A DNA stretch of 52,399 bases, the filler included, from Bipalium vagum (Eukaryota): the NCBI GenBank assembly GCA_037834085.1. It is 2 parts of 2 records of this genome, joined end to end, with 100 filler letters (N's around TTAATTAATTAA, not from the genome) between each part and the next. Parts side by side here need not be neighbours in the genome. Positions count along the whole stretch, not along the records: positions 1 to 31,968 come from JBBMKC010243708.1; 1 more part is not named here. One strand, 5' to 3'. Positions within the stretch are counted from its first letter, which is position 1; every line of letters begins with the position of its first letter. The notes under the pieces were generated by a model, which saw only the letters and a list, made by a program, of their open reading frames with translations, had not been told where the DNA came from and ran no database searches. This document shows positions 27,401 to 29,975 of this stretch, in pieces. The position numbers and the translations under genes are program-made.

Positions 27401-29719
27401 TTTGACTCATTTCGAGGTTGTCGGAGAATTTTTTACTCTTTTTGATATGTTCCCGCACTGCCTGATAAATTCTAGGAACCATCCAGGAAAATGATAATGA
27501 TTTCGGATAAGATAACGCATCAATATCAGGAGATAAAAACGTTGGGTACAGGTCTACAATCAATTCCATTTCTGAGGAATCTTGGACAAAAATTGCTGTG
27601 TAATCTTCACCTTCGAATATATCCTTAAATCTATATTGAGGAAAATTCATTAAAAAGATGATTTAAAAAGATGACATAACTAATTATAAAAACTAAAGAA
27701 AGCTATTTACTTATTAGAATGTTCCACTTCCAGCAAAAGCTGGTGCCTTTTCCGCAAAGCTTCATAGAAATCTTTAAAACAAACCACATTAAAGCCCAGT
27801 GAACGCATAATTTTCCCAAATAGAACACAGGAGTCTTTCAAACGCAATAGTGTGTCAATGTCTGGTATATGTTCTGAATTGGCATTAACGAAATCCCCAA
27901 CTCTCAAATGAGTGTGATTCCAGAGCTCGTCCAGATAATTTCTCGTGACCATCGATATTTGACTATGGCGAATGTAATCTTCTATGACGAAAAATCCCAC
28001 AATTCCACTAAAGAATTCGTAATAATTTCGGACTGATTCCTAATAGAAATCAAATAAAATCAATAATGTATATCTATAAAAGCATTGGTGACAATCACCG
28101 CACAAATTATAAAATTGATTTATTAATAATAATTTAATCAAAATTTTGAAAATATAGATCTCAATGTTTAAACCAAAATGAAAAGATAATTTTAATAAAT
28201 AAACCAATCTCAGATTTTTCAATGATAGTTGATCAATCTATATTATTGTAGATATGATGATCAATTGAATATCAATTGAGATATAATTCTCGGGTGTCAT
28301 AATTCTAATTGAAAATCGATTGTCAATCCAGTAACCTTTCATATCTCAATCGGTTTGAATATTAACGCAGTTGGTACACTTTAAGGCGTCAATAGAGACC
28401 GTTCAAAGTTTTCATCAAATATATTTAGATAATGTTTTTTTTATAATTTTTATTACTCAATTCGACTGGGTTTACCAATGTCTTCAAAAATATATTGATA
28501 TAACAAACTATACAATATACAACCTGCTTCGTGAGAGTCAACAGTAACATATGCTGGCTCTTTCTTTGTGATCGATAAGACTTTTCGAACTCGTGCCTGT
28601 CACCCAAAACAGAATGGATATGAAGACATCTGTACACAGGACCGAAATCGATAAGATCCTCGACATTCGATGATTCGGTTTCCAAAGAATCTTCATTGTC
28701 TTTATTGAAAGAGTCAATTGAAAGAAGTTCGGAAATTTCTTTATCAATCGAATCTAAAATCGATTTAAAACCAGTATTGCTATTTAATTTTGATAAAATA
28801 AATTTCAATACCCGGCTCGTCGATAATTCCCGTGTAAAGATTCACTTGTTTGTTTTCGCCAGTTTTATTAAAAGAAATACCGTTCACGGTCTTTCTTTTT
28901 GTATTATCAAAACTGATGTCCATGCCAGACTTCATAGCCATTTGCTTCATTGCACACATGCCCAGCCCGACAGAGTGCTTACGTACATTTTCTAAGAAAT
29001 CTTTTATCTCGTCTCTACTGGCCGACTTGATTTTGTCTTGCATTCCGGGAATTTGGTTCTGAAGAACTTCGGAGAACGCAAACTGTCTGACACGTTGCAT
29101 TTGATTCGTTTCCAAATTGTATAGTGTTTTCAATGCTGGATAATATCTCTTTTCATTAATGCTTTTATTTGCTTTCAAATATTGATCAAACACCGGTAAG
29201 CATGTCTGGAGATATTCGATTGCCTTATCAATATTATTCAGAACTGAGTAACAATTAGACAGTTCGTTGCAATCCTGTTTGACCTTTAAATGTTAAAAAA
29301 TAAAAATATTAAAAGATAAAAACAATTTGATCAATTTTCATAAAATTTTTTGTTACCTTTTTAACGGAATCATCCAAAGACTTCTGAATACCACTAAAAC
29401 TATGTTTTAAATTATTTGCATCTTCTTGGATCTTCAGCAATTCTTTGATAGATTCCACAAAACCCTGATAATAATGATTGCAGAATTTTTCGATATCTTG
29501 ATCACGAATATTTATTTCGTTATCCAATTGTCTCATGAATCGAGTGAGAATTTCATTTGACGAATTATTAGGAGATGCATTTTCTAACTGACGAAGTTTG
29601 CGGATTACATTGGCAATACTACCACATGAATTAGATTCAATTTCAGATATAAGACTAGCGAATTCTTTATTAAAATCACAAACATTTGAACTGCCAATTA
29701 AATATGAGAAGTCATTCAT
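24493..29719 (-). CDS. EXOC6: Exocyst complex component 6 (Sec15), 888 aa; exons 29719-29357, 29283-28812, 28753-28524, 28039-27711, 27630-26519, 24653-24493
   Basis: Sec15 motifs DIEKFCNHYYQGFVESIKELL, CLPV, KRYYPALKTL, IKDFLENVRKHS, DLIDFGPVYRCLHIHSVLG, IVGFFVIED, VPRIYQAVRE, YLRSTFESFTNLP, FEELRQLTDL-DWSTY. GT-AG junctions keep the frame. The last exon (GNPYDLV...ILKQLKDLK*) was found manually. The exon 2/3 junction is the least certain. Confidence 0.93.
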
Positions 29720-29725
29720 TTTAAT

Positions 29726-29975
29726 TTATTTCGACAAAAGACTAATACGTTCCTTAATGGAATTTAATGATTCCAATAACTTGTCCAGATCTGATTCTGT
29801 TAGATTTAATGATACTTTTTTCTGTTAATAACTGAATTGAATATTACAAAACATAACTAAATCTTACGTTATCAGAATTGGCTTCAGAAGTCAAATCAAA
29901 ATTAATCAGTATTTCACTATGAACTGTAGAAGACAAATTTATTTTCCAATCAAAATGAGCTAAATTGTTAGTCAT
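29726..29975 (-). CDS. Small COMM-domain protein (COMMD6/COMMD8-like), 67 aa; exons 29975-29868 and 29821-29726
   Basis: Translation MTNNLAHFDWKINLSSTVHSEILINFDLTSEANSDN|KKVSLNLTESDLDKLLESLNSIKERISLLSK*. Phase-0 46-nt intron GTAAGA...AACAG matches the local short-intron class. The LxxFDWKI..SS strand, a second hydrophobic strand and an amphipathic C-terminal helix match the COMM domain pattern as recalled; no search was run. Confidence 0.72.

Follow-up and report, generated by a model that had tools for sequence, protein, structure and literature searches.

We have studied the start of the EXOC6 (Sec15) gene in a stretch of DNA of 52,399 nucleotides from Bipalium vagum (assembly GCA_037834085.1), referred to below as the window; the analysis was confined to positions 1-31968 (JBBMKC010243708.1). 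On the minus strand the EXOC6 coding sequence is directly preceded by a small spliced open reading frame (ORF), from which it is separated by only a few nucleotides. The small ORF and EXOC6 are very probably co-transcribed in some form. The reading that we favor, to which we assign a probability of roughly 0.45, is that both are carried by one mature bicistronic mRNA, in which EXOC6 would be reached by leaky scanning or by reinitiation.

Results

The initial annotation described a spliced ORF of 67 codons, a TAA stop, the sequence ATTAAA and the ATG of EXOC6, all in the same frame, and this order can be read directly on the minus strand (Table 1). It had also been claimed that a promoter or 5′ untranslated region proper to EXOC6 would not fit in between, and the small ORF does indeed abut the EXOC6 start. 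The spacer lacks an AG, so there is no acceptor between the two coding sequences, and any acceptor serving EXOC6 would truncate the small ORF. Unspliced, the small-ORF frame hits a stop within its intron, which resembles the EXOC6 introns here in being short, in beginning with GTAA and in having a weak AG acceptor. Four codons 5′ of the small-ORF ATG, the same frame contains a TGA (29990-29988).

The identity of the downstream gene is clear from its protein matches. The ORF piece at 29309-29719 matches the Pfam family EXOC6_Sec15_N (6.8e-12), and six collinear tblastn blocks with cestode EXOC6 proteins run from 29665 down to 24496. The EXOC6 homologues bear the domains PF20651 and PF04091. After the two close relatives described below (P0156 and P0157), the closest EXOC6 proteins are those of Protopolystoma xenopodis, Taenia and Schistocephalus, at 33-37% identity.

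A check of the TAA against the reads had been called for. A 10-kb Logan contig of run X1, with a word depth of 24, spans 28700-30792 with 0 differences to the window, and this independent assembly carries the identical TAA and spacer, which rules out an assembly error at either. In the 440-Mb assembly the locus occurs once, and no paralogue of either small-ORF exon was found in the same genome. An 812-nucleotide joint in the X1 data was taken to be spurious, since a single contig supports it with 21 AT-rich letters.

A protein search with EXOC6 exon 1 led to two relatives, P0156 (77-78% identical) and P0157 (68-70%), the latter being a spliced 170-amino-acid EXOC6 model from a third species. 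Both start at the same methionine as EXOC6 here, and the AAAATG context is conserved in the three species. The relative used for comparison of the junction is the source of P0156, contig L011 (Logan, SRR33002330), which begins within small-ORF exon 1, so that the Trp motif and the ATG are out of view. The remainder of the layout recurs there, with an intron at the same place and an in-frame spacer of the same length (Table 1).

The coding character of the small ORF is evident from the way in which the two species differ. In exon 2, 24 of the 31 residues are identical, and the proportions of nonsynonymous and synonymous differences are pN = 0.16 and pS = 0.94. The corresponding values for EXOC6 exon 1 are pN = 0.14 and pS about 1.0, which makes the two exons indistinguishable. 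The exon 2 differences fall on codon positions 1, 2 and 3 in the numbers 10, 2 and 19, and the small-ORF frame is the only frame, sense or antisense, that is open in both species. The last 24 codons of exon 1 are less well conserved (42% identity, below the 77% of exon 2), and the introns of the two species can barely be aligned. An antisense gene was rejected as the source of the conservation, since the sole antisense frame that is open here is stopped in the relative; a chance ORF or an assembly error is ruled out by the relative's locus together with the independent contig. By this comparison the small ORF is a protein-coding gene under purifying selection, and the proposal that it is genuine coding sequence stands, with the same layout in a relative and a constraint equal to that on EXOC6 exon 1. 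The abutment is, on the same grounds, older than the divergence of the two species, which has saturated their synonymous sites. Since at least two species have inherited this layout from a common ancestor, the expression of the two genes must be coupled or overlap in some way.

A property of the junction that favors scanning-dependent translation is its lack of AUG codons. Between the two starts there is no ATG in any frame in the 207 exonic nucleotides here, nor in the 181 nucleotides visible in the relative, whereas dinucleotide shuffles lead to an expectation of 3.8 and 3.3, respectively. In the neighboring coding exons ATG-free windows number 0/1,680 at a length of 207 nucleotides, and about 10% at 100 nucleotides. 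Leaky-scanning bicistrons are marked by an absence of alternative AUGs before the second ORF, a weaker context for the first ORF and a short spacer (PMC11291117), and spacers of a few bases favor reinitiation (PMC11291117; PMC3035654; PMC3923131). The start codon of the small ORF lies in the context GGTATGA, and that of EXOC6 in AAAATGA.

The scheme would require a mature mRNA with both ORFs, or at least with the last small-ORF exon and EXOC6, on which the ribosomes reach the EXOC6 AUG by scanning. On the leaky path some ribosomes would skip the small-ORF AUG (GGT ATG A) and go on to that of EXOC6 (AAA ATG A); on the reinitiation path they would restart at EXOC6 right after terminating 6 nucleotides 5′ of it. 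The absence of any AUG between the two starts would keep the scanning path open. If transcription starts 5′ of 29988, ribosomes translating a mini-ORF that overlaps the small-ORF start (Table 1) would bypass the small-ORF ATG and could resume only at EXOC6. A conserved RNA structure was sought at the junction and none was found (consensus -2.85 kcal/mol), so there is nothing that resembles an internal ribosome entry site (IRES). Inspection of exon 2 by eye for a motif complementary to 18S rRNA, like a termination upstream ribosome-binding site (TURBS), revealed only a shared TGGA, which is due to the Leu-Asp codons.

Table 1. Features of the small ORF and EXOC6 in the window, and the counterparts of the junction in the relative
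Feature	Position	Strand	Description
Small ORF, exon 1	29868..29975	-	ATG + 35 codons, MTNNLAHFDWK...SDN; ATG 29975-29973, last codon AAC 29870-29868
Small ORF, intron	29822..29867	-	46 nt, phase 0, GTAAGA...TTAACAG
Small ORF, exon 2 and stop	29726..29821	-	31 codons KKVSLNLTESDLDKLLESLNSIKERISLLSK, from AAA 29821 to AAA 29731-29729; TAA 29728-29726
Spacer	29720..29725	-	6 nt, ATTAAA, in frame, no AG
EXOC6/Sec15, exon 1	29357..29719	-	121 codons from MNDF; ATG 29719-29717 in the small-ORF frame; donor AAG/GTAACA
EXOC6, entire gene	24496..29719	-	at least 6 coding blocks (tblastn: Taenia, Schistocephalus and cestode-like EXOC6 proteins)
Mini-ORF	29968..29988	-	7 codons, ATG TGT TAT TGG TAT GAC TAA; overlaps the small-ORF ATG out of frame
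Possible alternative 3′ splice site	29960..29961	-	gactaacaatttAG/CT; resembles real acceptors of the EXOC6 gene
AATAAA	29666..29671	-	within EXOC6 codons 16-18; common to both species
Relative, small-ORF exon 1	L011:2-79		26 codons visible
Relative, intron	L011:80-136		57 nt, GT..AG, same place
Relative, exon 2	L011:137-229		31 codons
Relative, stop, spacer and start	L011:230-232 (stop)		TAG, then TCGAAA (6 nt, in frame), EXOC6 ATG at 239

Does the small ORF encode a COMM domain? The label of COMMD gene given to it in the initial annotation has in its favor a Trp motif, the length from this Trp to the C terminus and a weak COMMD9 match; set against these, every exon-level statistical test was negative. 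The Trp lies in the COMM-like motif HFDWK, which is carried by exon 1. It is Trp10 of the small protein, in the context LAHFDWKINL, and the corresponding sequences in four clear COMMD genes of the same genome are VDVSWRLDY, KDLKWRIDI, NDIDWRLDY and LDVNWKMGL. A Trp at the start of the COMM domain is the sole residue that is strictly conserved across COMMD proteins (PMC10187114). The Trp is 57 residues from the C terminus, a distance identical to that in L003, an intact COMMD protein encoded by a single exon, and the putative domain forms the extreme C terminus, where the criterion for COMM is a length of about 64-80 residues. The best match of exon 2 in the Protein Data Bank (PDB; 177,635 sequences) is to the C terminus of human COMMD9 (165-191 of 194), with a weak E of 0.6.

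The COMM profile searches (Pfam, PDB, ESM Atlas and a profile made from the same genome) were run on each small-ORF exon alone. With E values of up to 10 allowed, neither exon matched Pfam COMM (PF07258, cut-off 22.4 bits). By itself, a true half-COMM exon from elsewhere in the genome (L004) reaches 28.9 bits, and the Pfam blank therefore counts mildly against membership. A six-frame Pfam COMM scan of the genome found six places, none of them in the contig of the small ORF. The COMMD9 match was lost with a two-species profile and with the relative's peptide, and exon 1 gave no COMMD match in the PDB with phmmer. There was no usable match to either exon in the ESM Atlas; the two exons did not stand out when a hidden Markov model of the COMM sequences of this genome was run against all six-frame pieces, or in hhalign; and BLASTP of the exons against L004 gave nothing. 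A broader COMM profile was attempted, but homologue searches with the COMMD ORFs of this genome returned 0 and two near-orthologue matches. The top tblastn match (L006) is itself a sub-threshold COMM match, and a likeness of 'GVSLN' to L004 was discarded, since it falls in the intron of L004.

Judged by eye, the small protein is probably a COMM domain. Read in the same manner, and with comparably modest confidence, it would be a minimal COMM-like dimerization module without an N-terminal domain, like human COMMD6. The latter is also very short and is a COMM-domain-only subunit of the Commander/CCC ring, from which it is clear that a COMM domain alone suffices for a working subunit (PMC10187114; PMC11189303); nine of the ten human COMMD proteins possess an N-terminal helical (HN) domain. 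Unlike COMMD6, the small protein would be shorter still, with a β1-β2 loop that has about 7 residues less. In the AT-rich upstream sequence at 29976-31968, which includes the remnant of a repeat or transposon, no coding-looking frame that could supply HN-domain exons was seen.

The genome also has ordinary COMMD genes, L002, L003 and L004, with Pfam COMM scores of 49.7, 34.4 and 28.9 bits, respectively, and L003 is a COMMD protein of 174 amino acids in a single open frame. The COMMD proteins of this genome (also P0167/P0168) have almost no relatives by word-based search, which indicates that the lineage is highly divergent.

We also examined the EXOC6 loci of other flatworms. The initial annotation had asked for synteny and spacer length to be compared in related species; both are as here in the L011 relative, and the arrangement is absent upstream of EXOC6 in Taenia. 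In Taenia crassiceps no similar ORF lies upstream of EXOC6, and the nearest gene is PITP, on the opposite strand and 1.8 kb away. Likewise, no similar upstream ORF was found at the Schistocephalus EXOC6 locus or in the cestode-like transcript L007. A metagenome scan for the locus in a third species gave one distant match only, and cluster look-ups gave nothing. By these loci the pairing of the small ORF with EXOC6 is not general in flatworms.

The intronless cestode-like EXOC6 transcript (L007:1-122, SRR21676486) has an open frame of its own, …APESQIYKTFLTEHNY followed by a stop, that ends 53 nucleotides before the EXOC6 ATG. This upstream frame of 22 codons is unrelated in sequence to the small ORF; it may have arisen by chance or represent the end of a different upstream cistron.

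Alternative Modes of EXOC6 Expression

Several observations weigh against a bicistronic mRNA read by scanning ribosomes. An upstream ORF (uORF) of 67 codons whose AUG has a purine at -3 should catch most scanning ribosomes, and classical reinitiation is inefficient after an ORF of this length. The AUG-free stretches of the two species are not independent, as 77% of the exon 2 residues are common to both, and the small peptide has few codon pairs that are able to form out-of-frame ATGs. The retention of a spacer of exactly 6 nucleotides is not significant by itself, because so short a target seldom takes an insertion or deletion. The start of the small ORF at ATG 29975 is predicted, and upstream exons are possible; if the alternative acceptor at 29961-29960 is used, the ORF could continue from exons beyond the end of the contig and not from this ATG. 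The Commander connection in particular has against it the negative outcome of all the exon-level tests of COMM identity. Finally, flatworms are known for spliced-leader (SL) trans-splicing and for operons, which gives one of the rivals a high prior (PMC12582326; PMC8629364).

That rival is an operon-like unit resolved by trans-splicing, in which a single pre-mRNA would receive a leader on EXOC6 and each transcript would yield one mRNA or the other. The genome appears to be that of a flatworm, as indicated by the EXOC6 relatives and by a mitochondrial COX1 that requires AAA to be read as Asn; flatworms trans-splice 10-30% of their genes, with up to about 15% in operons (PMC12582326; PMC8629364), and cis and trans splicing often use common acceptors (PMC12582326). 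The initial annotation had pointed to an AG in small-ORF exon 2, at about 29742, as the nearest acceptor. The AG is present, its position being 29743-29742, and it is the nearest on the 5′ side of the EXOC6 ATG; it would leave a leader of 22 nucleotides. The other candidate is the small-ORF intron acceptor, AG 29823-29822. An AG lies within 25 nucleotides of the EXOC6 ATG in both species, that of the relative being in the TAG stop (cgaaatAG/TCGAAAATG), but the candidate acceptors lack both positional conservation and a good pyrimidine tract. Small-ORF mRNAs would in this case be polyadenylated within EXOC6 exon 1, where an AATAAA is conserved at +46/+49 in a block of unusual synonymous conservation, and AATAAA and ATTAAA overlap the stop and spacer here. 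The relative lacks the AATAAA at the stop, however, and Asn-Lys codons in an AT-rich genome readily produce this hexamer. The two genes are on the same strand and 6 nucleotides apart, within the 300 bp or less that is used to define SL operons, but between the cistrons there is no room for a 3′ end and an acceptor. The gaps in flatworm operons are about 100 bp (PMC8629364), and 45/45 Schistosoma mansoni pairs have an intercistronic stretch after the upstream 3′ untranslated region (UTR), with a median of 99 bp and a minimum of at least 5 bp (PMC12582326). With coding sequences 6 nucleotides apart and a spacer devoid of AG, the acceptor in the present case would remove the last codons of the small ORF, and trans-splicing does not predict an exon 1 that is free of AUG. 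On this evidence we place trans-splicing second, as less likely than the bicistronic mRNA but well worth keeping in view.

The block that contains the conserved hexamer deserves separate comment. EXOC6 codons 12-20 (NVCDFNKEF; 29660-29690, minus strand; L011:270-296) are identical at 26/27 nucleotides between the species, and the same codon is used in 8/9 cases, compared with 38% overall; this is the highest value of any 9-codon stretch. There are 4 AATAAA sequences in the approximately 2.5 kb of EXOC6 coding sequence. The AATAAA at 29671-29666 might serve a short mRNA of the small ORF as its poly(A) signal, which we offer as a lead only, the conservation being marginal once the number of windows is taken into account. 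The block may reflect poly(A) signaling, a constraint on early coding sequence, or chance.

The two genes might instead be independent and overlap, with the start site of EXOC6 in the intron or exon 2 of the small gene, the 3′ UTR of which would enter EXOC6. Exon 2 and the spacer would then form an AUG-free leader of 102 nucleotides, the sequence is very AT-rich, and the conserved AATAAA at +49 could terminate the small-gene mRNA. Yet this genome is not compact (440 Mb, introns of up to 1.9 kb, kilobases between genes), so that an overlap would be unforced and nevertheless kept over a divergence that saturates synonymous sites; a promoter is hard to fit into a strongly constrained coding exon, and an exon 1 that lacks ATG is unexplained. 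We regard independent expression as quite improbable. Readthrough of the stop would give a fusion of the small protein with Sec15 as a main or minor product, and both ORFs are in frame with a 6-nucleotide spacer in two species. Such retention of an in-frame 6-nucleotide spacer is expected by chance, however, and the stop and its 3′ base differ (TAA A and TAG T), leaving no common context, which argues against programmed readthrough. Neither stop context resembles any readthrough context known to us. Three species retain the EXOC6 methionine within the context AAAATG, no relative has an N-terminal extension of EXOC6, and a fusion is accordingly the least credible of the explanations. A different role for the small ORF would be that of a conserved-peptide uORF that throttles EXOC6, e.g., by stalling at termination. 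Its C-terminal half is the better conserved (77% compared with 42%), its stop lies directly before the main AUG and no family assignment has been proved. On the other hand, 67 codons and an intron are long for a regulatory uORF, and the Trp motif, the strands and the C-terminal amphipathic helix resemble a folded domain. This idea, which seems to us highly improbable, is compatible with a bicistronic mRNA and does not exclude it.

Other Features of the Window

Upstream of the small ORF by 330-900 nucleotides, at about 30300-30880 on the minus strand, there is a possible decayed mariner/Tc1-like transposon. Its frames were recognized by eye (...GGEKWIYYENSKQ... and ...LTQQAISCRFKNLED) and have no Pfam match; the X1 word depth is 400-2,900 at 30662-30879. 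A repeat of very high copy number forms the end of the contig (31643-31968), with an X1 word depth of 29,000 to 650,000 and many variant letters. The assembly breaks at this terminal repeat, and any upstream exons are thus untraceable.

Elsewhere on the contig, on the plus strand, a multi-exon OSBP/ORP gene occupies 579-14099, with Pfam Oxysterol_BP matches at 5802-6032 (2.4e-20), 12818-13108 (2.3e-15) and 13836-14096 (1.4e-06) and with further exon-like ORFs at 1931-2119 and 9323-9601. A tRNA-like match of 30.6 bits lies in an intron of this gene (10143-10213). An uninterrupted ORF of 491 amino acids, rich in Lys, Asn and Arg, is present at 20996-22471 on the plus strand; it has no Pfam match and an A-over-T skew of 0.375, and may be a low-complexity coiled-coil gene or be derived from a repeat.

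The assembly contains at least three intact COX1 genes (contigs C253947, C246471, C253320 and C38971; L012-L015), two of them flatworm-like and one of another animal type, as well as decayed nuclear copies that resemble L013. The L012 sequence restores the motif GGFGNW only when AAA is read as Asn, which we take to be the flatworm mitochondrial code. Judged by these genes, the sample is mixed, or comprises two flatworms together with prey or host.

Discussion

Of the systems described previously, the locus appears to work most like a leaky-scanning or reinitiation bicistron, and it fits neither this class nor the SL operon fully. The leaky-scanning bicistrons of green algae, and stoned and Snapin in Drosophila, have a short first ORF, a bias against AUG codons ahead of the second ORF, a short spacer and no IRES-like structure (PMC11291117). 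The present locus is like them in these respects, but its first ORF has a purine at -3 and so is not obviously weak, trans-splicing is available to the organism, and the bicistronic mRNA is a prediction. In termination-reinitiation the stop and restart codons also lie a few nucleotides apart behind a long first ORF, as in influenza B M1/BM2, calicivirus VP2 and some human mRNAs (PMC3035654; PMC2793014; PMC3923131); the known cases are mostly viral, however, and the codons here do not overlap, being 6 nucleotides apart. The SL operons of Schistosoma, cyclophyllidean cestodes and Macrostomum resemble the locus in having both genes on the same strand within less than 300 bp, with no room for a promoter (PMC12582326; PMC8629364), but they keep an intercistronic stretch, whereas here there are 6 nucleotides with no acceptor among them. 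In the SL1-type operons of C. elegans and in those of Ciona that lack intercistronic sequence, 3′ end formation and trans-splicing compete at essentially one site (PMC12582326), which would find a parallel here, except that in those operons a 3′ UTR of the usual kind precedes the poly(A) site, which directly adjoins the acceptor, and here the 3′ UTR would lie inside the downstream coding sequence.

We found no paper that describes a COMMD-EXOC6 gene pair, and the supplement of PMC12582326 lists no exocyst or COMM operons. A physical link between the two pathways has, however, been published, as EXOC4, EXOC5 and EXOC6 were recovered with CCDC22, a subunit of human Commander, in its interactome (PMC11189303). 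The full picture, in which a COMM-only mini-protein of Commander type and Sec15 are made from one coupled bicistronic mRNA that fixes the ratio of two recycling components, is doubtful when all its parts are taken together.

If EXOC6 is translated from a bicistronic mRNA, the locus would provide a natural example of translational coupling in an animal, a cellular and non-viral case of a stop and start in close succession that is used despite the availability of trans-splicing. In its spacing the gene pair would fall outside the range reported for flatworm operons, and the small ORF would be a hidden gene of the kind that standard annotation misses or fuses; the P0157 model, for example, starts at the EXOC6 methionine. 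Were EXOC6 trans-spliced after all, this would be an extreme operon, with its acceptor within the upstream coding sequence, and as such informative on the competition between polyadenylation and trans-splicing. If the pairing of a COMM-like protein with Sec15 is real, it would be a genetic hint that the two cooperate in recycling from endosomes to the cell surface.

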